Source: Marsupella aquatica
Taxonomy: Eukaryota > Plantae > Marchantiophyta
Assembly (NCBI GenBank): GCA_973895155.1
Contig: OZ316899.1
Location: 5,149,241 to 5,213,240 of the forward strand
Direction of reading: 5' to 3'
Length of the DNA: 64,000 nucleotides
Shown piece by piece: positions 41,547-63,200 of the stretch. The notes beneath the pieces are model-generated. The model ran no database searches, was not told the DNA's origin, and saw only the letters and a program-made list of their open reading frames with translations. A program made the position numbers and the translations under genes. The stretch's first letter is position 1; each line of letters starts with the position of its first letter.

Positions 41547-42249
41547 TGTGAGATGATGTTTATTTGGTAAAAGGAGAAATAAGGGAAATTTTTAAATTTT
41601 AACCCTTGGAAACACTAACTCTTATGACCTTTTAGACCTGTTAGACTCCTATGAGCACTTTAAGGTGCTAACCGGAAAAGTTGCTTGGTTGAGATGGCCG
41701 GTTCGACAGAAGAAAGCCGTTTTAACCTCCCCGACCCATGCACAACTACATTTCACTACGTCGTGACTTCCTTTCGCGTCATGTGACACGACGTTACTCC
41801 CCAGTACATCTCCCTCTACGTTGTAACCCAAAATGGGTTTACCCATTTGACTTTCCTTCCCATTTTACGTCGTCTAGAGGGTCTTTAATTTAACGTATCT
41901 CCCAATAGGGCTATTTACGTCTTTTATAATGAGGCAAACATGTAGACGTCGTCCCAGACGGTGTAACAGAATAGGGTTGGGTCGACATATAGATGTACGT
42001 CGTTTCAGACGTGGCTATAACGGATACTATGCTATGACGACGTATAATGGATGTTGGGCGATGTTAGACGTATATGACCAATGTGGGAAACGACGTTAAT
42101 GGAATCCAATTGGCATGCGTAAGGTTTTTTGCGGGAGTTTTTGGGGCAAGGCTACTGGGACCTCACTGCACAGGTCATTCATGATTTCAGATGTCCTACG
42201 GGTACGATAGTGCACAGAATTTGCAGAGTGAGATTGAAAGTCTTCAGCT

Positions 42250-42810
42250 ATGGTACGTAAGATATTCAAGGATGTCCACTGTTGTTTTCTTCCGCTAGGT
42301 GAAGAAGACAAGACTGTTCGTGGCTTTTTTTGTCGTGGAGGTGTGATAGACAAGTTTTGTAACTCAAAGACGGAATACTTGCTTGCCAATACCTGGAAAC
42401 AAGTCACAGAGCACTTCAGTGACTATCCTGGATTGATCGAGCACTTTGCAGAGTCCGTGCATTTCATCTCGATTTGTTGGGTACAGTACTCCATTCTGGG
42501 CAATAAGGAGTTGGACCCAGAAGAGTTTTTGCTGCATCCAGGGGATGATTTGATGCTGGACGATACGCCCAAGGATGATGATGGTGAGGCTTGTCCACCA
42601 AAGTTGGCTAAATTTCAGTTGTCACCGACTGAACTTGATATTGTGATGTATGACTACAAGGAAAGTTGTGCAGCTGAGATTGAGGCTGAAAGGCTGAAGG
42701 TTGGTGAAGCAGTGGTCCGCAAGAAATGGAACGCCAGCAATAGGCGTGATTCGTACAAAAAGAGGAAGGCAGATGAGGAGTACTACTGGTCTGGTGAAGG
42801 GACCCCTTAA
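42250..42810 (+). CDS. BRCT-domain protein (transposon cargo)
   Basis: Intact 186-aa ORF. IFKDVHCCF...GGVIDKFCNSKTEYLLA...HFISICWVQYSILGNKELDPEEFLL fits the BRCT consensus (GG, conserved W). Charged tail with KKRK. Confidence 0.7.
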   Translation: MVRKIFKDVHCCFLPLGEEDKTVRGFFCRGGVIDKFCNSKTEYLLANTWKQVTEHFSDYPGLIEHFAESVHFISICWVQYSILGNKELDPEEFLLHPGDDLMLDDTPKDDDGEACPPKLAKFQLSPTELDIVMYDYKESCAAEIEAERLKVGEAVVRKKWNASNRRDSYKKRKADEEYYWSGEGTP

Positions 42811-43446
42811 GCTACACTAGTGCCAAGGTCAGCTGGAGACGGAGGAGCATCATTTGCCTAGGATTGGAATCAGTTTAGACTGGAGTCAGACTCATGCCTT
42901 ATGTGCACGTTGTATGTTTCTGAGCGCATGAATAAAAAGTCCCTCCCAGGCAATTTATATTTGTAATGTGTTTTGTGAGTAACGTCGATTGAAACTTTGA
43001 ACGTCATCAGAAGAATGGTTAAATAAACGTTTACGTCGTTTAAGACACGGTAACACAATCTACGTCGTCTACTACGAGGTAAACCAAGGACGTACTATGT
43101 ATACGTCGTTTGTACAAAGTATCTACGACGTAACTATAGATTAACATCTTCATTATGGGTATAAGCGACCTTTGATTGTCTAATGATGTTGAGGTTGACG
43201 TTAATAAGTTCGAAGTGTCAATTGGCCTACGTGATAAGGGTTTACGTGCTAGGACCCATTGAAGGTTGTTCGAAGGCCGAGGTTTAATGCTTTTTAATGT
43301 GTTCTTAGCTATAAAGTGAGGAAAGAAGAAACTTTGCACAACTCTCCCTCCAGTTTGCCAGATCTCAAACGTCGAAACATATGTCAATATATATGTGGAA
43401 GGTGGGCATAGCCAATACATATAAATGGAGGGTGTGAAGGATAGTG

Positions 43447-46400
43447 TCAGTCCGCATCGTCTGCAAGGACTGATGCCATGAAGCCCTTCCTTCGCCGAGG
43501 GAAAATTGGTATGACAATGGACCATCCTCTCATGGTCTGCATCGGAACCATAATGCACTGATCCACCTGGCTAGGAAAAACTATGGTGTCACTAAACTCA
43601 GTCCCTGTGGGTGCAACTCGGGTTGTGTCCACGCGATAAAAACCACACTCATCCGCAACCATCGTAGCTCTCGCTGGGGGTGACATGATCGACTTGTGCC
43701 ACCTCACCTCTAGTACAGTGGTGACAAATGACCCAAAATGAACATCTAAAATGTCCACAACTGTCCCACAATAAGGAACCTCTACATCATCTACATCAGT
43801 CATCATGAAGATTCCAGAGTTACAAGTACTCTTCTTCATATGGTCTGTCCTCCAAGTCCGAAAGTGATGCCCTGACTCATACATGTGTGTATGAGTCGTG
43901 GCCCGCATCCCTGGCCCTCTAATGATGTTTTGTACATCAATGGGAATGGATGTAGACCCATGCACAGCCAAGAGCCTCTCCATGCGCTCCAAAGCCCAGA
44001 CACGAAATGATGCAATGCCACGACCTGCTTGCGCAACTCCCACTTGAAGCTCCAACCATGCACTGCCAAATACGTTGTCACAAGATTGTTAGAGATTTGC
44101 AGCCTTCTCAAATCCAATTCACAATCGATTAAAATTTTAGAGTACCATACCTATACATCTCCCTCCAATCAGACATCTCCGGTCGATTCCCCAACACATA
44201 ATTATGGATCTGTCGACGAAAGATGTCATCATCCAATGATCGCTTCTTGGCCGCACCCATCAATCGCAGCCCACCATTGTCATCATCTTGTGCCTCTTCC
44301 CAAGTTGTGGGAGCTTTGCTATCCAAACTCCCTATCACCCCCCGGAATAGAAAAGACACTCTGACATAATGAACCCTGTTGCCATACTTCCCTCAGGTCG
44401 AGCGGGTTGACGCACCCAACCCTTGAGCACCTTCATATATCGCTCAACCCAATACATCCATCGGGCATGGACTGGGCCTGCAATGGCAACTTCATCCACC
44501 AGGTGACATAGCAAATGCATTTGCATGTCAAACAGTGTTGGGGGGAGCACTCGCTCCAAATTGCACATCACTTGCGCCGTCCTCTCCCTCATCAAAGGAA
44601 TCTTTGACTCCTTGATCTCCTTGGCACATACCCACCTATGAGGCACTCAAAAACATGACAGGAATAAATATCACCGCCCAATCTGAAAGTGGGCTAAGAT
44701 GGTTACCAATTCAATGCCTACTAACATTCCCTCTACTAAGATTCCTACAAACGTCGCTCTGCAGGACGTTCCTGAAGAGGGGTGACTTATACGACCTTGA
44801 ATACGTCGTATGTGGAGTCTTATTTTTACATTACCTAGTTATAGATGACGTAAAGTATTAAGAGACTACGTATCCTCTCTAGAATGTTGTTTGAGACACC
44901 ATAAATTTATGGTCCCATAACACCACAAAATCCACGAGTAAGATATTTTCAACCTGAAAATGGAGCACAACTCGTACACTGTGAGTCGGAGTAGGTGGCG
45001 CTCTCTAGAATCATCGCAACAACGCAACACTGCAGGAAGCACATGCTGTATCAACTTGTGATAATCGTGGGACTTCAACCCTATCTGGGGGATGTACTCA
45101 TTCCTCGTTGTGCACCCACGGAATCCAGCTCCGTAATGGCTCGGGAACTTCATCTCACAAATCATCCCATTCACATCCTTCAGAATGTCTCGAGGCAAAA
45201 TCCAAGGGGCTGGTGGTGTCACCCCAGTACGTGCTGTCCAATAATTAAAGAGAATCAACTTGTTAGGGTTTGGGGTTTCAGGCAAATCCGGGCAACTTCT
45301 TACAAATTAAGGGTTGATCGATGTTTTATCATGTACCTGATATCCAACAGCTCTTCACAACTCCTACATTCTTTGCATCCACACGAACTCCACGAGTATC
45401 ATTCTCACCATACATGTGCTTCACCAAATTCTTTGCGACATTCACTTCAATGTGCATGGGGTCCAGTAGCCACCGGATCTTGAGCATCTGCTTGCACAAC
45501 ATGGTAATCAAGTGAAAAACTCTAGCATTATGAGAGTTGATGAAAAAATCTATACACAACATTTGATAGGTGTATTGTACCTACCCTCCAATAAGGCAAG
45601 TCCCACAATGCTAAGCGTTGGTTTACTCCACAATCTTTGGGTTTCAGCAGCTTAGCCTCCACCATCTCTGCCATTTGAATTTGAGCTTCTGCTGAAGGCG
45701 CGTTAGGACATGCTCTTAACTCAGTCTGTGCCCAATGTCTTGTGTTACATCGCATGGGGTCATCCATTGACAATCTCATCCTGCTGCCCTCATATGTGGT
45801 TTTGTGCAATAGTACTGAGTACCTCCCATGCAACTCAGGGCCACATCAAGGGCAACCTGAGTACCCAGCCACCTTCAAGCCTGATATTGTGCCCATGCCT
45901 GCCAAAGAAACCCCATCATATTCCCACAATAAAAGAAGCCAAATGAAGACATAAAGTCATTTAGCACAATATAATCACATTTGGTAAGGTTTTTGAATTA
46001 CCGGGCCCATCAGTGGTGCAATGGGTGATCATGACTCTCATGTTGAATGTCCTCCCATTGTCCGGTGCACGGGTGACATCTGTTGTTGGAGCCCCAATTT
46101 CCCACAAGTCATGTAGCTCTTCATAAGCTGGGGCCAAGCAAACATCTGGATTCTTGCAAGCCTCGGGACCGGGAATGATAGCTAGGAGGAGAACATGACC
46201 TTTTTTCATCGCCAACCATGGAGGGATGTTCTGATTTATCAAAAGAACTGGCCAAATGGACTTTGGTTTCCGTCGTTGCTTGTATGGGTTTACCCCATCT
46301 ATGGCCAACCCCAACCGAACGTTCCGTGGCTCTGTAGCAAAATCTGGCCATGTGGCATCAATGTGCTTCCATGCTGGACTATCTTGGTGATACCGCATTA

Positions 46401-47736
46401 TCCCTGCTGGGGATTTGGTCTCGGCATGCCAAGTCTGTAGGGAGGATAGGTGTCTTCGCCGGTATAGATGCTGCAATCGGGGTGTGATTGGAAAATACCT
46501 CAGTACCTGAATGTACAACAACCATGAGGGCGGCATTTCGTCGTTAACATCACAAATACGTTGACGATAACTATGTTCCAAAAATCTTTACGATGTTCAA
46601 TACGACGTATTACTTCTGTATTGAACATAACTACGTATCCTAAAAGTGAACGTTGTCCAGAACGACGTTATAGTTTCATGTTGAGCAGATCTACGTTCTC
46701 TAAACTTTTATGTTGCAAAAAGCGATGTTGGACTAAAAAACGTCGTATGGAAAGACGTAAAAATCACAAGGGAGACGTTAGGGTTATTTACTTCTAGTTG
46801 AAAGACGTACTACTCACGAGGGCAACGTTAAGGGACACAAAACGCCGTAAAGTACGTCAAAAATTACTAAAATACAGATGTGGTACAGAGAGGATGTCAT
46901 TACCTTCTCAGCAATCTTGTCTCCAATGGTATCAGGACGATACCATGGAAGGCCACATCGCTCAATTGGGCAATGGGTGAGGTCCAAGTACGGTCCTCTA
47001 TACAAGATGCACCCATGAGGGCACATATGTATAGTCTCTAACGCCAGTCCGATAGATGATAACAACTTCTTAGCCTCCCTCACACATCCTGGAAGGTTGT
47101 TAGGTTGAGGCAAGAGTTTGTTGTGGAACAACGCAAAGAGTGCATCTGTATGGACATTTGATCCATTGAAAACCCCCTGTAAATTCAACATCAAGAGTGT
47201 GGCTCCCAACCTGCATTTGCATTGAAAACCACAAAGAAACCAGCTTTTTAATTAGTTTAAGGCATGCCATTGAGGATGGTCCAATTGGGGACTTAGGGTT
47301 TATGCACACCCTTAAGCAACATTACAGTAGAAAAACTATAATAGCACCTCAGAGAAATGTACCGTGAGGTCGGGGAACCCTGGAATAGCGGAGTCCTGGA
47401 TTCAGTTTCCAATTGGTCCCAATCATCTTCGTCTAGTTCCATGACAGGAGGGTCACCCTCAGGTACATGAGGTCCAAAGTGGATGTCCACAAGGTGCGCA
47501 AAAGCATCCTCTTCAAGAATAGGTGCATCCATATCATCCTCTACATCTTCATCAAAATCGTCATCATGTGCATCATGGTACTCATTCACATCCTCGTCCA
47601 CATCCTTGTCCTCATGCACATGATCACTCTCAACATCTTCGTCGTCAGAAAAAGATAATGTGGCTCGCATGTGGAACGAACGGGCTGACTCCGTCATCAT
47701 CGATGGATGAGGTGTAGGTGTTATATTTGGACCATC
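43447..47736 (-). CDS. En/Spm TnpD-like transposase, multi-exon (Transposase_21, DUF4218 and DUF4216 regions)
   Basis: RYFPITPRLQ...DSPAWKHID...EPRNVRLGLAIDGVNPY...SIWPV; FDMQMHLLCHL...GPVHARWMYWVERYM...PEGSM; PYCGTVVDI...VFPSQVDQC. Frame-preserving exons 47736-47363, 47210-46904 and 46506-46002 were checked; later exons were not checked base by base. Confidence 0.9.
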
Positions 47737-47879
47737 CTATGCAAGACGTCAATATTAGATAAGGTCATCCCCAAATTAGACAATGTGTTCCCAATAGTGC
47801 ATGAGGTAATGAAGGTCAAAGAATCCAATATAAGTCTCACTCTGAGTAATGAATAAGTGATCAATAACATATATAATCT

Positions 47880-48695
47880 TCAATGCCAATCATAGTCTAC
47901 AAATATCTCATCCCCTGCTCGAATGGTGCGGGTGGCATGTGTCAGGATGTAGTGACTGCATCCCAAGGGCAAACGAGGGTGACTCTGGTCATGGTACTCA
48001 TGCCACTCAGCGTTGGGGCGGAACCCCAAACGCCGACACCCCACTGTGCTATTGATGTAACCCGCCAAGTTTCCAGTACGAGGGGGGTAACCATCCATCT
48101 GAGTATACCTAGGGTCCAACTTTAGTGACATGCCATACCGACCAAAGGTTGGGCATTGGCGAGACAAGATACGTCATCTATGGGCCGAATACTTTGGCCC
48201 ATAAAATGGAATCAACTCGGGCAGGTCCTCAGGTGCACAACCTTCCGGCACCATAATATCCACGAGTGCAAATAATCCAAGACCTACGTCGTCTCCCAAT
48301 GTGGATGGGAGGAGGACCCATGGCCTATCCCAAACTACAATAGGCTCCCGAACAAGCAGGACCATAGGGAGGCCAAATTGGGTTGGGAATGAGTCCTTTA
48401 TGATGTCCAAGGCTCTCCCTCTTAACTCTCTTGGTGCTCGGGAAAAAGAGGCATCAAGAAAAGGACAGTGTGGCGGCACCGTCCTAGGGGTACGAGACGT
48501 AATGGACCGAGGTCTAGTGGTGACCTCTACTCCCCTCTCAATAGGGTGACTCCGAATGACCCTCCTCCTCCTATCAAAAACACGGTCTATTGCCCTTAAC
48601 GTGGCATCGAGTGCTGATGGGGGAACTAGTGCTGTGAGCGCGCGACGTGCAACCTGTCTCATGTGGTCCAAGGGCGGAGAGACCACACACAAAAT
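47880..48695 (-). pseudogene. SET-domain exon inside the En/Spm element (one in-frame TGA at 48176-48174)
   Basis: STLGDDVGLGLFA...FYG...GNLAGYINS...PNA...HATRTIRAGDEIFVDY matches the main SET motifs. ORFs 48174-48704 and 47880-48167 are in frame; CAG acceptor at 48696. Confidence 0.8.
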
Positions 48696-48844
48696 CTGTT
48701 TCACATGTGAACAAGAGAACTTCAGAAATCAGGGAAAAAACCATTCCAACTAAACACTCAAGAAACTCAAGAAACCCAAACATGTTATATTCAAAAATAA
48801 GGACTTAATGAATTGAATAGTGTCAATAAAGGTTTATGAATTAC

Positions 48845-49363
48845 CTGATGTGTCGGGGGTACGTAACGGCCGTGGAGGCCTAAATGGCTAAGGACAGTGG
48901 TCCTCTCGTGGGAGACGACGCCCTTGCATCTACTACATGGGCAGGGCATCTTTCGGACTGGGCCAATCCCCTGAAGGGCAGCCATGGCCTCTCCAAACCT
49001 ATCCTCATCCTCCGGCATGGGTGATCGGTGTCGGGGTGTGTGGTCATCAGAGGGAGACCTGGACCGGCGGTGGCGGTGGGACTGTCGATGGGACCTCCTA
49101 TGCCTTCGTCGCTCCCGATGTCGATGATCCCTAGATCGGTACTCCCTATCTGAAGACTGATCCCAACTCCTCTCAGACGAATGGTGCCTGCTCCTATCAG
49201 ATGATAAGTCCCTCCTCCTCTCGGCTGAGTGGTATCTCGACCTCGCAGGTGAGTGCTCCCTCCTCCTCTCCCTCCCCCTATCATGAGAGCGGTACCTGTC
49301 TCGGTGATGTGCACCTCCATCATAGCGATCATCAGATGACCACTCCGATGAGCACGAGGCCAT
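48845..49363 (-). CDS. First coding exon: RS/RH-rich region plus transposase-associated Zn domain (CPCxxC...HL...G)
   Basis: ATG at 49363. MPCPCSRCKGVVSHERTTVLSHLGLHG matches the En/Spm transposase-associated domain. Phase-0 donor CAG|GTAATT at 48844. Confidence 0.8.
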
Positions 49364-49881
49364 GGCCTGCAATAGTACACACACATATACACGCAAACTT
49401 GCAAACTCAGCCTTGGAAATGGAACGTCGGGACCACTATAGTACCACAATATTTACGTCAAGTAAAACGAAGTACTTTCACTTTACGTCGCCGAGAACAC
49501 AATACACGATGTATTTCTTAAACCCTACGTCATGTACCGTACCCCACACGACGTTACAGTAAACCCTACCTTTTAACGGTGTACAGAACAATGTTTAAAT
49601 GAAAATGTCATCTAGCACAACGTATTACTAATCGATCAATTAGGGCATCGTCGTGAAAAATGACGTAAATAGACAGAGAACGGCGGAAACACATTGTTGC
49701 AAACTCTGCCGCATTCTATTCGGAAAATACCGGGGCATAGTGTCGAATGTGAGTCATTCGACCATTCCGCACACACCTCACCCCACATCTAGTGTTCTGT
49801 TCTGTTCGTGGCTCTAGTGAAGCTCTAGTGAAGCTCTAATCTTTGTGAAGGTCATCTACATTTGCTCCAAGTCTCGCCTCA

Positions 49882-52044
49882 ATGTCACGTCCAGCTTATC
49901 TGCCCCTCAGTATCAACTTTGATGCTGTGAAAGTTTCCATGGAAGACCCAGAGGAGGTGGAGAAGGTTCGAACAGCTTTGCGGTCAGCACATTCACTGAT
50001 TGATGCTTTCAATCAGAGTTGGCAATTCATGGGAGGAACTGGGACGAAGGAGTCACGATTTTTGGAATACCTTCAGAACATAGAAGAGAACGCTCCAGCA
50101 TCCGACGTTGAGCCCGACATTCAAGCACCAGAGTTCTTGCGCGACCTTCCGGGGGCATCACTTGATCCTCTTGCTTCCTTCCCGCCCTTGATGGACTCAG
50201 TCTGGGACTATCCCTCGTTCTCTGGGATGGAGCCGGATTCACAACCACCCTGTGTTACTCCCATCAAGAGCCAAGTGAGGATTCAGAGATATGAGCCTGA
50301 TGATTCAAGTACAGAGTTGCGGACACACAGAAGGCGACGTCGTTCCCGTTCTTTGAGTAGCAATAGTAGCATTGAGAGGAGACAAAAAAGGGGAAGGGAA
50401 AGGAGCACAGAGAAAGAGACAGTGCGCACACACAAGAGAAAAAGGGCTGAACGAGATTCGAGGGTGGACAGAGATAGGAGAGGTCGAAGGTCACATCGAC
50501 ATTCACATTCAATCGGAGGAGGTCATCGGCGAGCTTCTCCTCACCGAACCGTTGCTACTCCTGCCAGCAAAGAACAACTGCCGGTCATCAGCCTGGCTGC
50601 TTTTGATGCGAAGCCAGAGGTGCTTGATGAGAAGGCGCTAACGAATCGAGTGCAGGTCTGCTGTACGAAACACTGCCCTGGGTGGACGACTTGGAAGGAC
50701 CTCGTGCACAATACAAAGAAGTTTCAAGTACTCCTCAATGACATACAGGCCGGATTCAAGAATGGCAGAGAGATTGATTTTCGACACATCAGGCAGAAGA
50801 TTGTGAGTTTCCTTGCTGACAGAAGATTCAGGTGGAGAAGCAAGGTCCGAGCAATGAAATGCGAGAAGACAGGGCAGTACCGTAAGCCTAAAGGGATGGC
50901 CGAGTCGGACTTCAACTTGATCGTGTCTGAACTTGAAGCACCCCCAGACACCCCAGTAGGAAAACGAGTGCACATGGGTGACAAAGCCACTGCAGCTCGA
51001 AAGAATAGCGGACGCCTTCTAGTAACCAATTTCTGGGGGCAAGGAGGATGGCGAGGGTTCCTCGCAACCTACGTAAGTCTCGGACCCAACTTCCACGTTT
51101 TCATTTCGCTGCTCCGGTGTAAACCATAGTGTAACGTCGAGATTTTGAAATTACGTCGCCTGATTCATTCATAACGTCGTCCATAACAACGTTAACTTTG
51201 ATTTGTAACTTCATCTGAGACGTACCTTAGGAAGAACGTCATCCTTGAGACGTTACATGTACCGCTTTAGTGAAAACGTCGTTAGAGCGACGTTAACTAG
51301 ATATGCAACGCATGGAACGACGTTAGCACCGATGCTGAGAGGGTTGAATACATGCTTAGGAACGACGTTCTTTTGCTTTCTCGCAGAAACGCAAGTTTGG
51401 TGTCGATGCCGAGCCGTCGGAGGAGGAGCGGCTGTACTCGAAACGGTATGGCCCGGCAGCGCTATGGGCCAAGTTGGCCTCAGTCCCGGAGGATCACCGG
51501 GTAAGAGCTAAAGTGATTGCTAGGTTGTAGTTGACTTTAGGCCTACTCTGTGACATTAACTGACCAGAATGCTATCATGCAGGTGGAGGATTGGACTCCT
51601 CCGGAGGGCTTGGTTGCACGGGCCATCCCTGAGGATCACTTGCCAGCCAGGGTACCGCCCGAGGAGGGTTTGCAGGAGGAGGCTCACGTAGATTGCGGGC
51701 AGGAGGAGGCAGAGACTCATGGGGGGCGTACTAGTGGCCAAGGCCGGAGGGAGAGAGAGAGAGCCAAGGGAGGGAGAGAGAGGGAGATAGGGAGAGATAG
51801 GTCAGATAGACGGAGGGGGAGGGAGAGGGAGAGGAGGAGGAGGGATGACACTAGGCGACCTCCACACAGTAAGGGGAGTAGGCCAGTGACTACTCATAGG
51901 GCTGCAACACAGGCAGATACGTTGTCCCCCAGTACCACTAGCTTAGAGGAGGATGACTCCAGGTACGAGTTGTGCCCGAGAGGCGTACAACCCACTTCTA
52001 CACGCAGGTCTGGACGTGATACCAGGCGGACTGAGCGTGACTAG
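49882..52044 (+). CDS. Divergent second En/Spm gene (TnpA-like, RS-rich), probably 3 exons
   Basis: 415-aa ORF 49882-51129 with an RS-rich stretch and a basic helical region (IVSFLADRRFRWRSK...KPKGM...NFWGQGGW). Donor-like GTAAGT at 51072; further pieces at ~51388-51500 and ~51583-52044. The TnpA assignment is weak. Confidence 0.55.
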
Positions 52045-56112: not shown

Positions 56113-59100
56113 GGCCACGGACCAGCTACTGTCATATTCCCGAGAGGGACAGTCATCCACATCGAATCAACCATACATGCACCAGCAGCCACCAGAAATC
56201 TGATCAGTTTTCAAGACATAAGGCAAATAACCTGCACATTTATACAAGTATACAAAACAGCAGAGAAGTCCTCCAGATTATAAAGAAAACTGAAAAAGGA
56301 TTACAAATCCAAGAAACATTCTCATCCGAACCTCCAGGATTGTATGTCACAAGAATACAATCACACTATACAGAACCTACCAAGCAAAACATATCCATCA
56401 CCTGGCATAACCGCCTGGGACACCCTGGGACAACAATGTACCATAAAATTATTAAAGACTCGGTGGGTATACCGCCAGCGGCAAAAACACCCACACAACA
56501 GCAACCCTGCCTTGCATGCTCACAAGGCAAACTTATAACTCGCCCATCGACTACAAAAATGATATATGCTATCCCCAAATTTTTAGAACAACTGAACGCT
56601 GACGTCTGCGGCCCTATAGAACCATCTAGTGGCCCCTTTAGGTTCTTCCTAGTCATGATTGACTCATCATCTAAGTGGTCACAGGTGTCCCTACTATCCA
56701 CAAGAAATCTAGTATTCTCACGAATCCTAGTAAATATACTGAAGCTAAAAACTCAGTTCCCGGACTACCCTATATGAATCCTCAGAGTAGACGGAGCAGG
56801 AGAATTCACCTCAAATACATTCAATGACTTCTGCCTCACAGCTGGGATAGAAGCCCAGTACCCAGTCCCATATGTCCACTCACAAAATGGGATGGCAGAA
56901 TCCGCTATTAAACGACTACAACTGATTGCACGCCCACTATTGATGCAAACTAAATTACCAGCCACGGCATGGGGACATGCAATCCTACATGCAGCATCCC
57001 TACTACAGTATAGGCCTTCATCCTTCAATTCCCTGTCCCCACACCATCTAGCATACGGCCTACCACCAGACATTTCCCACCTGAAAACATTCGGATGCCA
57101 AGTACTAGTTCCCATCTTGGGACCTAAACAAACCAAGATGGGTCCCCAACGCCAAATAGGAATTTACGTAGGCTTTGATTCTCCATCTATTATAAGATTC
57201 TTAGAACCTACGACAGGAGATGTCTATAAAGCCAGATTTCAGGATTGGCACTTCTTCGAAAATATTTATCCAAAACTAACAACCAAAAAGCAAGAAGACT
57301 TAGTAGCAGTTTCTCTGCTAAAATGGGAAACAACAGCTCTACTAAGCAATGACCCAAGGACAAAACAAACCGATGAAGAGGTAAGACATACCTTACATTT
57401 AAACCAGATGCTGCACACATTAACTGACGCATTCAATGATGCTGCTACTGTGACCCGATCCCACATTGAGGCTGGAAATGTACCAGTGCAAATTCAACCT
57501 CAACAAACAGAAGCAGCCGATGCCCCACCCAAAACTAAGAGGGGCCGCCCCCTTGGATCTAAAGATAGTCGACCTAGGCAGAAGAGGAATGCCACCACTA
57601 CAACTACCACACAAAAAATTGACAATACCAATGAAGAAGTTATAACAATCCCATCACAGGACAACAATGAAATCTCCATCCAGTATATGCATACAGGAAA
57701 AGTGTGGAAGCGAGCATATACCAAAGTCGATGACCAATTCGCCTTCCTCATTTCATAGGAAATTACTAACGATACCCCTGATCCACTTACGATATAGGAA
57801 GCCCAGAACAGAGAAGACTGGCCACTATGGCAGGAGGCAATAAATTTGGAGTTAGATTCGCTCATTAAGAGACATGTATTTGGCCCGATCTCACCGGCCC
57901 CACTAGAAAGGAGCCTAACGGGATACAAATTCACCTTTGTGCGCAAAAGGAATGCGAACGGAGAGGTCATCAACTACAAAGCTTGACTGGTGGCAAAAGG
58001 CTACACTCAGATTTATGGTCGAGACTATGACCTCACGTATTCCCCCGTTATGGACTCAATCACATACCGCTATATGATCGCTTTTGCTTTGATTCACAAA
58101 CTAGTAATGCACCTTATGGACGTAGTCACGACATACTTGTACGGTATTATGGATACTGAAATATATATGCAGGCCCCGCCTGAACTAATTACAAGAGTCA
58201 AGTTTCATATTCAGGGGGAGAAAACCCACAACCAACATCCAGACCTGCAATCAGACCTTAAGCAGATCACGGCTAAGCCGAACAAAGGACCTACTGTCCA
58301 TAATACCCATGGGATACGACCCCAACCTAACCAGCCTACAGCCGGGTTAGAGGCAAGGGAAGCTCCTACTGAGCCCTTGAAATGGTACCAAACAAATAAG
58401 GGAAATCCATCCCCAAAAGACAGTGGACTTCATCCACCCCAACATGTCAATCAACAAAATAAGAAGCAGACACCGAAGCCAGCATATGCAGTACAAGTAA
58501 TGAGATCAATAAACGGCCTCAAACAGAGCGGCCGGATCTGGTATAAACGCTTTCGTGATGAAATGTTGACTTTACAGTTTACAAATGTAGACATAGCACC
58601 CTGCCTATTTCTTAAACATGTTGGCACAGAGTTTGTGATACTTGCCATTTACGTTGATGACATAAACATTTTTGGAACTAAGCAGCTCACAACATAGACA
58701 GTTGAAACACTCAAAAGAATCTTTGAAATGAAAGATATTGGAGTCCCGAGCTACTGCCTAAGCATCCAGTTTAACCATCTAGAAGATGGCATCCTCATTA
58801 ACCAATCTACTTACACACAGAAAATTCTTAAGCAGTTCAACATGCAGAATTCATACTCGGTGAGCACTCCAATGGACCTGCGTTCTCTTGACCCAGCACG
58901 AGACATGTTTAAGAAACGCCAAGAACATGAACAGGTGCTGGGACCAGAGAAGCCATACCTATCAGCGATTGGAGCCCTACTGTACCTAGCAAATCAGACA
59001 CGACCTGATATCAGCTTTGCAGTAAGCCTCCTAGCAAGACATGGATCACAGCAACAATCCGACATTGGAATGGCATTGAAAGAGTGTTTTGATACTTACA

Positions 59101-60236: not shown

Positions 60237-63200
60237 TGTTATACCCTAATTATGATTGGGTATACTAACTATAGTTAGAAACCATGGTTAACTCCAACCA
60301 GAGTTACCATATGTATATATTCTCTCCTTGAAATAGAAGATCATATCATTGTTGGTGTATTTTAGTTTGTAACACGTTATCAGCACGAATGTGCTCTTAA
60401 GTTTTTTTTTTAGGGGGTCGTTCAATCTTTAGGCAGTTATACTTGACAGTTATCGAATTTGTCAACTTTTGGGCATCTGATGCATGCCTTTTTCTTTAAG
60501 AAAACATCAAGTAACAATGAGGGATGATTACCAATAGCATTCCTTATTCAATAGAACTTTTTTTTTGCACCACAATTCGGAACTCAATTGGACATTTTTG
60601 ATCTCAGGATGACATCGAATTCCATTGAGAAACTTCTATTCCCAGCCTTGCAGATTGATGGCAAGAATTACAACGATTGGTATATAGATGTAGAGGTCCA
60701 TCTCACTGCAAAACAAATTGATGAGGCCATACACACAGATGCCGGTGTAGACCAATACACCAAGGCACAAGCCTTAGTACTACTTCGACATCACTTAGTA
60801 GATCCTCTGAAATGTCAGTATAAGACTGTATACAATCCTCAATTACTCTGGGATGCATTGAAATCGAGATTCGAGCATATCACTACGATCAATCTGCCTA
60901 ATGCTCTACAAGCATGGGTTACTCTAAGAGTCCAAGATTTCAAATCAATAGATTTATACAACAGTGAGATGCTTAGGATCTCAAATGAACTCCATATGTG
61001 TGGAGAACCAGTAAGTGATAAACAGCAAATTGAAAAGACATTAGCTACATTTCACCCAACTAACTTGGTGATTTTGAACCAGTACAAGAATATGGCTTTT
61101 ACAACATACTCCGCGCTCATTGCCCACATGCTTTTAGCAGAACAGAATTCCATCCTCCTTATGAATAATGCAAAGGAAAGACCTCCGGGGACACTTCCTA
61201 TACCACCCATTACTGAAACCAACTTAGTCACACAGGATACGAGAGGAGAAACATATATGACAACTTCTAATGGACAAACATTAAGGGGGAGAGGTTCATA
61301 TCGTGGCCGAGGAACAATTAGAGGAAGAGGAAATTTCTCTCAAAGAGGTGGATATAGTTCCAACTACAGAGGACGAGGTCGTGGAAGAATGAACAATGCA
61401 AATAGGAGCAACTGGAATAGTGGAAAAGCAGATTTCCAACAACCAAATCGGGAGCGACAACGAACCTCCTTCAGCAACAAACAACAAAACCCAATTACAT
61501 GTTTCAGGTGCGGAACCAAAGGACACACCCAGAAGGTATGCCATGCACCTAGCCACCTCGTTCTACTTTATAACAAGAGCTTGAACGAATCAAAATTTGA
61601 AGCACATGGGGCTTTTTTAGAGTCACCTGAGATTATACCAGAAATCCATATGCTGAATTCATCACTGAATATCGAGGACCCGGACTTCTGCATCGTCGAC
61701 AGTGGTACAATCCATACTATCCTTCAAGATAATAAATATTTCCAAGGAATTACCCCTTCACAAAGGAAAATAACAACGATAATGGGACAACATCAAATTG
61801 AGGAGGGTCATGGCAACGCCACAGTAGTTCTCCCAGAAGGAACAATTATTAAAATCACATCTGCGATATATGCTCCCAAAGCAACAAGAAATCTACTTAG
61901 TTTTAAAGACATAAGAGCAAATAACCTACATATTCAAATAGATATTCAAGACTCACGAGAAGTTCTACAAATAGTATCTCACTCATCAAAAGGCAGACTT
62001 GTTAAAGAAAATTTACAAGCTTACCCTTTAGGATACTATGCAACTCGAACTCAATGCTACCATGTTCAGACTGAATCACAGAACCTCACAGAGATCTGGC
62101 ATAGACGATTGGGACATCCTGGAACAAGCATGTTCCACAGAATTGTCAATAACTCTAAAGGAGTATCAAAAGAAGTACATCCTAGAGCATTCAAAGGACC
62201 ATGCCTTGCCTGCTCACAGGGCAAGATGATTACTGCTCCCTCCAATTCCAAAACCGAAAACCACATACCTGCATTTCTTGAGAGACTTCATGCAGATGTT
62301 TGCGGACCCATCGATCCTCCCAGTGGCCCATTTTGCTATTTTCTGGTCGTCATAGACGCAAGCTCCAAGTGGTCAAGGGTTTCCCTATTATCAACCCGGA
62401 ACCTCGTTTTCTCTCGGATTCTGGCCACATTATACGACTGAGAGCTCAATTCCCAGAATATCCAATTCGAACCCTTAGGACTAATGGAGCTGGAGAGTTT
62501 ACATCAAAAACTTTTGATGAATTTTGTCTCATCAACGGCATTGATTCACAATACAATGTCCCATATGTACATTTTCAAAATGGTATGACCGAGTCACTTA
62601 TTAAACGTATACAACTGATCTCTTGACCTTTATTAATGCAATCCTCTCTTCCAGCGACTGCATGGGGACATGCAGTCCTACATGCTGCGTCTCTCCTTTT
62701 ATACAGACGATCAACCTACAATAGCACTACACCTCATCAATTGGCATTTGGAAATTCTCCAAACATTTCACACTTGAGAATATTCGGATGTCAGTCCTCG
62801 TACCCATCCTAGGTCCCAAACGGACAAAATTAGGACTTCAGAGAAGAAAAGGTATCTATGTGGGATTCGACTCTACATCGATCATCCGATACATGGAACC
62901 TACCACTGCAGATATATTCAAAGCCCGCTTTACTGATTGTCATTTTTATGAAACCATTTTTCCAACTTTAACATCACCAGAGGGAAAACAGAAAACATTA
63001 CCAAATATATTCACCTGGCACGCTAGTCCTGAACTATGTCCAGATCCACGCACAGAACAGGCTGAATTAGAAGTCAGAAGAATTATCCAACTCACAAAGA
63101 TTATGGAAGTTATACCTGAGTCATTCGCAGATGCAACGAATGTAACTAAATCTCATATACCAACAATGAATACCCCATCCTGGATACAAATCGGACCTCA

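Follow-up and report, generated by a model that had tools for sequence, protein, structure and literature searches.

A 64,000-nucleotide (nt) stretch of the genome of the liverwort Marsupella aquatica (GenBank assembly GCA_973895155.1, contig OZ316899.1, positions 5,149,241 to 5,213,240; hereafter the window, with coordinates counted from its first letter) contains an En/Spm (CACTA) transposon in which a coding exon for a SET domain stands between a zinc-motif exon and the body of the transposase. We consider this element to be a recently inactivated copy from a liverwort CACTA family that carries the SET exon inside its transposase unit, splices its transcript in two ways, and makes a lysine methyltransferase as one of the products; our rough probability for this reading is 0.6. 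Comparison with related loci indicates that the SET frame is a real, long-conserved, and selected coding exon and that a protein uniting the zinc motif with the SET domain (Zn-SET) exists in the family. In the mechanism that we propose, one promoter would give a pre-mRNA in which the first exon, ending in phase 0, has two alternative splice partners: joined to the SET exon, it would encode a Zn-SET protein of ~440 residues ending at the SET stop codon, while joined to the next phase-0 acceptor, with the SET exon skipped, it would encode the transposase. Zn-SET would act for the element as a lysine methyltransferase, with a histone, the transposase, or a host factor as its possible target. The element family probably makes its own chromatin or protein modifier. 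The window copy itself cannot make the Zn-SET protein, since a TGG codon of its SET exon has become TGA, and its value is limited because the copy is broken.

Exon layout and conserved architecture

The features of the element are listed in Table 1, where related loci are designated by L numbers. In the first exon, a region of ~110 residues with much Arg, Ser, His, and Asp precedes a CxCxxC...H motif. The exon ends at a phase-0 donor, CAG/GTAATT (a slash marks the splice site), which is the only consensus-like site (score of at least 5 of 8) from the zinc motif to the point where the reading frame meets a stop. A preliminary description made from the sequence letters alone had placed the end of this exon at a phase-0 donor at 48844, and this was borne out. 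It had also assigned to the exon an Arg/Ser-rich region and a transposase-associated zinc domain; the Arg/Ser-rich region and the zinc motif stood, and the Pfam match to the domain (Transpos_assoc, PF13963) stayed below threshold, with an expectation value (E) of 7.8e-4 and 20 bits against a cut-off of 27.7. A weak top match to Transpos_assoc, at profile positions ~29 to 63, recurs in five of the eight relatives' zinc exons that were scanned.

Downstream of this donor lie two acceptors in phase 0. At the first, the SET frame opens at 48695 (ILCVV...), and at the second (AG at 47738-47737), the next exon opens at 47736 (DGPNI...); the codon directly before 47736 is TAG, so that the frame opens exactly at the acceptor. 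Thus, the positions given earlier for the two acceptors, 48696 and 47737, were correct in keeping the reading frame and not as exon starts, both being the last bases of their introns. If an alternative phase-0 acceptor 24 nt upstream of the first, with a better pyrimidine tract, were used, the SET exon would start at 48719; the site that opens at 48695 is the homologue of the acceptor in the closest relative. As described earlier, the SET frame terminates at 47880, and the exon would replace the transposase in the sense that it ends in a stop codon of its own.

Table 1. Features of the CACTA element in the window, ordered from the 5' end of the transposase unit after the element as a whole
Feature	Position	Strand	Basis or remark
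CACTA/EnSpm element	41754..49794	-	~8.0 kb; termini and subterminal motifs
Exon 1, Arg/Ser-rich region and zinc motif	48845..49363	-	ATG at 49363; 173 codons
CxCxxC...H zinc motif, core of the Transposase-associated domain	48884..48943	-	PF13963, sub-threshold
Intron, exon 1 to SET exon	48696..48844	-	149 nt; GT 48844-48843, AG 48697-48696
SET exon with its own stop codon (47882-47880)	47880..48695	-	Pfam SET; relatives; dN/dS
GLGLF, GxG cofactor motif in the N-terminal part of SET	48270..48284	-	Both Gly invariant or nearly so in 31 relatives
Premature TGA in the SET exon	48174..48176	-	TGG, a conserved Trp, in relatives L002, L003, and L018
AGYINS, family version of the NHS motif	48048..48065	-	Asn and Ser conserved, His absent
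GDEIFVDYDW, C-terminal SET motif with conserved Tyr (ELxxDY type)	47886..47915	-	Family conservation
Spacer, SET stop to next acceptor	47737..47879	-	143 nt; ends TTGCATAG/GAT
First transposase-body exon, with an acidic region followed by the PLFQG motif	47296..47736	-	Homologues after SET in L002 (41%), L003, and L018; 3' end approximate
Transposase_21 (tnp2) core	45964..46581	-	PF02992, E 1.8e-38
DUF4218 domain of the transposase	44338..44646	-	PF13960, E 8.5e-29
Conserved C-terminal transposase block	43450..44055	-	63% identity to Calypogeia fissa L018, 38% to L003

Relatives of the SET exon were collected with the pieces on either side of the TGA searched separately. A full HMMER scan returned 41 proteins, two of them at E <1e-30; a word-based protein search with the N-terminal piece gave no match, which, given the 41 HMMER relatives, reflects a limit of sensitivity. 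Most of the relatives come from run assemblies and metagenomes, and those with a species name are gene models from two liverwort classes, represented by Riccia sorocarpa (Marchantiopsida) and Calypogeia fissa (Jungermanniopsida). Every SET relative with an inspectable neighborhood was transposon-linked. At all loci with enough flanking sequence (L003 to L010; L011 to L014, from Riccia sorocarpa; L015; L016; L017; and L018, from Calypogeia fissa), the SET open reading frame (ORF) is immediately followed on the same strand by Transposase_21, DUF4218, and sometimes DUF4216, and L001 and L002, which are short contigs, continue after the SET stop into the acidic exon that begins the transposase body. 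Among loci from named genomes, L018 of Calypogeia fissa is the closest to the window, with identities of 68% in Transposase_21, 70% in DUF4218, and 65% in the C-terminal part of SET.

An exon with the CxCxxC...H motif precedes SET in L002, L003, L013, L015, L016, and L017. In L002, L003, L015, and L017, this exon and the SET ORF are in different frames, and in L016 they are split by a stop codon, so that joining them needs splicing. Consensus-like phase-0 donors after the zinc motif, paired with phase-0 SET acceptors, are present in the window, L002, L003, L015, and L016, while the donor candidate of L017 is weaker. In the Riccia gene models KAL3688689 and KAL3678077, the zinc motif is followed within a few residues by a phase-0 intron (135 or 133 nt; ACG/GTAAGT ... 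CAG/TG), at the same place as the intron of the window copy. In three lineages (L001, L011, and L012), a single ORF without interruption runs through the zinc motif and SET, so that these members of the family encode the Zn-SET protein directly; a short way beyond the zinc motif, their loci have weak in-phase candidates for an internal donor of a transposase isoform, GAG/GTAC in L011 and L012 and GGA/GTAC in L001. No zinc exon was found within 4 kb upstream of the Calypogeia SET ORF, and that copy may be truncated.

Similarly, a phase-0 acceptor for the exon after SET was recognized in seven loci (the window, L002, L003, L001, L014, L011, and L017). A single donor with two phase-0 acceptors is seen in the window and in L002, and the same phases are met again in L003, L013/L014, L015, and L016. 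By itself, such frame agreement has a chance of ~1 in 9; it rises above chance because it is conserved in diverged relatives. This comparative splice-phase evidence suggests that the SET exon may be skipped to give the transposase. Canonical plant TnpD proteins carry their zinc domain at the N terminus, and no further zinc motif was found downstream of SET and ahead of the transposase body in the loci scanned. The SET exons of the window and of every relative terminate in a stop codon, and none encodes SET and transposase as a single polypeptide.

Several observations count against two-way splicing. A search for a near-identical spliced Zn-SET form of P0006 (P numbers designate protein relatives), a protein that occurs on eight contigs from consecutive runs, yielded none, and no transcript, junction read, or complementary DNA (cDNA)-like contig was found; the Riccia genome annotation, on which the Zn-SET models are based, mixed long-read cDNA with ab initio prediction. 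In the window copy, the SET acceptor opening at 48695 has a poor pyrimidine tract. The lineages with a continuous Zn-SET ORF would need an internal donor to make the transposase, for which only the weak in-phase candidates of the GAG/GTAC kind were seen. Finally, in several lineages, an in-frame ATG within the first ~15 codons of the exon after SET offers a possible separate start for the transposase.

This last observation leads to the main rival explanation, namely, that the element holds two separate genes and no alternative splicing takes place: Zn-SET would be a 5' accessory gene, and the transposase, having lost its N-terminal zinc domain to that gene, would have its own start and perhaps its own promoter. 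Such an arrangement would account for the invariable stop at the end of the SET exon, for the single Zn-SET ORFs of three lineages, for the early ATG in the window (47700), L002, L003, L001, and L011, and for the frequent splitting of SET and transposase into separate genes in the Riccia annotation. Nonetheless, only ~95 to 145 nt lie between the SET stop and the following acceptor in four lineages (the window, L002, L003, and L001), which leaves little room for a polyadenylation site and a promoter, and this spacer ends in a pyrimidine-rich AG precisely where the frame opens. The phase of that acceptor fits the phase-0 donor of exon 1 in all seven loci, the exon after SET in L014 is without an early ATG, and canonical TnpD proteins begin with the very zinc domain that the transposase would have lost. 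The short spacer, the acceptor-like exon start, and the agreement of phases weigh against two separate genes, an explanation that we hold to be unlikely but take seriously.

The SET domain: predicted fold, motifs, and selection

The part of the window SET exon that follows the TGA (48173-47883) matches the Pfam SET family (PF00856) with an E of 2.5e-5 and 25.1 bits against a cut-off of 22.4; among the relatives, 23 of 31 match at E ≤0.01, the best at 1.3e-8. Conservation in the family extends to GxG, DG(Y/D)P.R, and PN, to Asn and Ser within YINS, and to Glu and Tyr within the C-terminal motif. No member has pre-SET or post-SET Cys clusters. Thus, YINS and the missing Cys clusters are family traits and not decay of the window copy. 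All the traits pointed out in the preliminary description, which spoke of a compact SET domain without Cys clusters, with YINS in place of FINHS and with one stop, were found again. Apart from the TGA, the window SET domain departs from nearly invariant residues at two noted places (WGR to WDR and LFP to LIP). With only these two departures, the inactivation of the window copy looks recent.

Structure prediction, with comparison to known SET domains, had been suggested at the outset and was run on the intact relative P0001 in place of the broken window copy. The AlphaFold model of P0001 (31 family sequences) has a mean predicted local distance difference test score (pLDDT) of 86.6, with a core above 90. 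A Foldseek search with this model retrieved many solved SET domains at a probability of 1.00, with E values of ~2e-6 to 4e-5 for Legionella LegAS4, MLL1, NSD1 to NSD3, SETD8, Set2, and SET7/9, and SET proteins of giant viruses and phages also match the fold. In the Atlas, a family member adjoins streptophyte SET clusters. The model therefore indicates that the product of the SET exon has a SET fold. In the same model, the first 35 residues of the exon (residues 1 to 35 of P0001; 48695 to ~48560 in the window) form a confident helical hairpin (pLDDT >93), followed by a basic, disordered linker.

Three findings speak against an active methyltransferase. The His of the NH(S/C)xxPN motif is missing from all 31 family members, which have YINS instead; a loop of 7 to 12 residues is inserted between INS and PN in the family; and a sequence search against solved SET structures was not significant (E of 0.05 or worse), only the fold search being informative. 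The absent His and the inserted loop make methyltransferase activity uncertain. The domain might accordingly be a pseudoenzyme, with the fold kept for binding, for instance to a host silencing factor, a histone tail, or the transposase, and with no methyl transfer. The replacement of the NHS His by Ser in every member, the loop before PN, and the weak Pfam scores all fit this possibility. On the other hand, about 30 diverged members show little or no variation in GxG, the Asn, the Glu, and the C-terminal Tyr, which is the pattern expected of a working cofactor and lysine channel, and we find a pseudoenzyme rather improbable, somewhat more so than two separate genes.

A fusion of SET and transposase in the manner of SETMAR, produced by splicing from inside the SET exon, is depicted in one Riccia model, KAL3678077 (L014, 6001-8693), in which the zinc exon and the N-terminal half of SET are connected to the transposase at a GT within the SET exon, all in phase 0. 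We rejected such a fusion as very improbable. The internal donor is weak (TAC/GTTGGT), the model splits the fold, and L014 still holds a complete C-terminal half of SET, which is the best-conserved part of the exon and would make no sense if spliced out. The L014 copy also carries an in-frame stop, and KAL3678077 is probably the predictor's route around it, although the model could be a real isoform.

Selection on the SET exon was estimated by the Nei-Gojobori (NG86) method, with the synonymous rate (dS) computable for three of seven pairs. Against L002, the nonsynonymous rate (dN) was 0.23 to 0.34 and dS was >2, giving a dN/dS of ~0.08 to 0.16, a ratio that is indicative only, as synonymous sites are saturated. 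DNA conservation against L002 reached a z score of 11.8 in the SET exon and 5.0 in the zinc part, while identity was at the level of shuffled sequence in the intron (z of 1.3), in the spacer (z of 2.1), and also in the acidic exon. These data indicate that the SET exon is under strong purifying selection. As to its fate in sister copies, to which the preliminary description had drawn attention, the exon is present in every inspected related locus, and its dN/dS against L002 is ~0.1. L003 to L010 represent the same element on eight contigs from the consecutive runs SRR33208263-71, at 99.5 to 99.8% identity; no substitution and none of the small indels falls within the 903-nt SET ORF, which has the same DNA sequence in all eight, and the contigs therefore hold too little divergence for a test of selection. 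Riccia copies are often broken, one by a frameshift near the C terminus and another by an in-frame stop. Broken copies are usual for transposon families.

In a maximum-likelihood tree of the family, for which the window SET exon was read through with an X at the stop, there are two well-supported clades; the window groups with P0001, P0058, and the Calypogeia protein, and its terminal branch is short (0.33, against a median of 0.48). From locus to locus, the SET domain loses identity to the window in parallel with the transposase. Capture of host gene fragments is a known property of CACTA elements, and the window copy does have a stop, but a functionless host fragment acquired by transduplication in the Pack-CACTA style was rejected as the least credible explanation of all, given the same exon position in every related locus of two liverwort classes and several other samples, the divergence of SET in step with the transposase, the dN/dS of ~0.1, and the transposon linkage of all inspectable matches.

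The element and its surroundings

The element is an En/Spm (CACTA) transposon, with a TnpD-type transposase, CACTA termini, and subterminal repeats, in agreement with its first assignment as an En/Spm element with a TnpD transposase. Its termini read CACTAG at 49794 on the minus strand and CACTAC at 41754 on the plus strand. No similarity between the element ends as inverted repeats was found beyond ~5 bases. The motif ACGTCG/GACGTA occurs at 12.6 per kb in the terminal 400 bp versus 1.8 to 1.9 per kb internally. The triplets flanking the element are TTT and TTC, an imperfect 3-bp duplication matching at two of three positions. There is one copy of the element in the window. Its transposase blocks shift frame where the relative L003 has single ORFs; these changes may be frameshifts or lineage-specific introns, and the window element is probably a decayed copy.

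ACGTCG/GACGTA motifs also cluster inside the element, at 43032-43127, 44751-44847, and 46603-46853, apparently in introns of the transposase gene. A 29-nt inverted repeat has one arm inside the element (46643-46671) and the other outside it (51171-51199). Adjoining the 5' end of the element externally, two Arg/Ser/Glu-rich ORFs on the plus strand, 49882-51129 (415 residues) and 51550-52044 (164 residues), point away from it and have no Pfam family. In the longer one, the C-terminal part, with Cys and Trp, looks like a real domain; this Arg/Ser-rich ORF was ruled out as part of the element, having no counterpart in any related locus. A counterpart of the 164-residue ORF was likewise sought in the related loci and not found. 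Farther away, at 56892-57758 and 60588-62441 on the plus strand, are parts of a copia-type long terminal repeat retrotransposon (retroviral SH3-like, copia-type gag, and gag-pre-integrase).

Significance and related systems

Transposons that encode enzymes for epigenetic marks are rare; examples include the VANDAL anti-silencers, fungal TET/JBP genes, and the SET genes of HarbingerS, MuDR, and Plavaka elements. If our reading is right, a land-plant CACTA family has kept a SET domain since before the split of the liverwort classes and has coupled it to the transposase through a shared exon, which would make a compact and testable case. Such a family would make it possible to ask directly if a transposon sets its own chromatin state, in plants with unusual transposon marks. 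We also considered that the shared zinc exon might send the SET methyltransferase to the sites of the transposase (the element ends or the subterminal ACGTCG repeats), where a histone mark could protect the element from host silencing or limit its own activity. This is speculative, and we would not expect it to hold. If true, it would amount to a self-targeted, transposon-encoded chromatin writer made by alternative splicing in the En/Spm style.

En/Spm of maize yields TnpA and TnpD as alternative splice products of a single transcript. The liverwort element resembles it in its CACTA ends, subterminal repeats, and TnpD-type Transposase_21 and in the proposed use of one promoter and a shared first exon for alternative products. 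Unlike in maize, the alternative product here would be a SET protein and not the DNA-binding TnpA, and splicing is deduced from comparative anatomy. SETMAR, a primate fusion of SET with the Hsmar1 transposase, is a domesticated host gene. It likewise has SET and transposase in one transcription unit; however, SETMAR is one fused polypeptide, whereas the liverwort family is a mobile, multicopy element in which the SET exon has a conserved stop. As a minimal SET enzyme, the predicted product can be likened to SETD8, viral SET proteins, and Legionella LegAS4.

Other transposons carry SET genes as accessory genes. According to the summary in PMC12730594 of a report by Kojima and Jurka (2014, Repbase Reports), HarbingerS and the MuDR transposons of Phytophthora, an oomycete, encode a SET histone methyltransferase. 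The liverwort family shares with them a resident accessory SET gene in a DNA transposon. As far as that description goes, and by description only, they differ in superfamily and host, and SET is a separate gene there, whereas here it is an exon that shares the first exon of the transposase. In red algae, the accessory gene PAG2 of Plavaka elements, which belong to the EnSpm/CACTA superfamily, combines an N6-adenine DNA methylase with SET; a cassette on Plavaka and Mutator elements comprises PAG2 as well as PAG3, which combines a ParB-like domain with an oxygenase, and Helitron captures are also mentioned (bioRxiv 10.1101/2025.02.11.637652). Plavaka and the liverwort family have in common a SET domain long retained in the CACTA superfamily. 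Again compared by description, PAG2 is a separate multidomain gene within a three-gene cassette of red algae, whereas the liverwort family has a minimal SET domain with a zinc motif in a plant-type CACTA element. A search of the available literature found no description of a land-plant CACTA element with a SET exon. Thus, transposon-borne SET genes are already known, and what is apparently new, as far as checked, is a minimal SET exon placed within a plant-type CACTA transposase gene and sharing its zinc exon.

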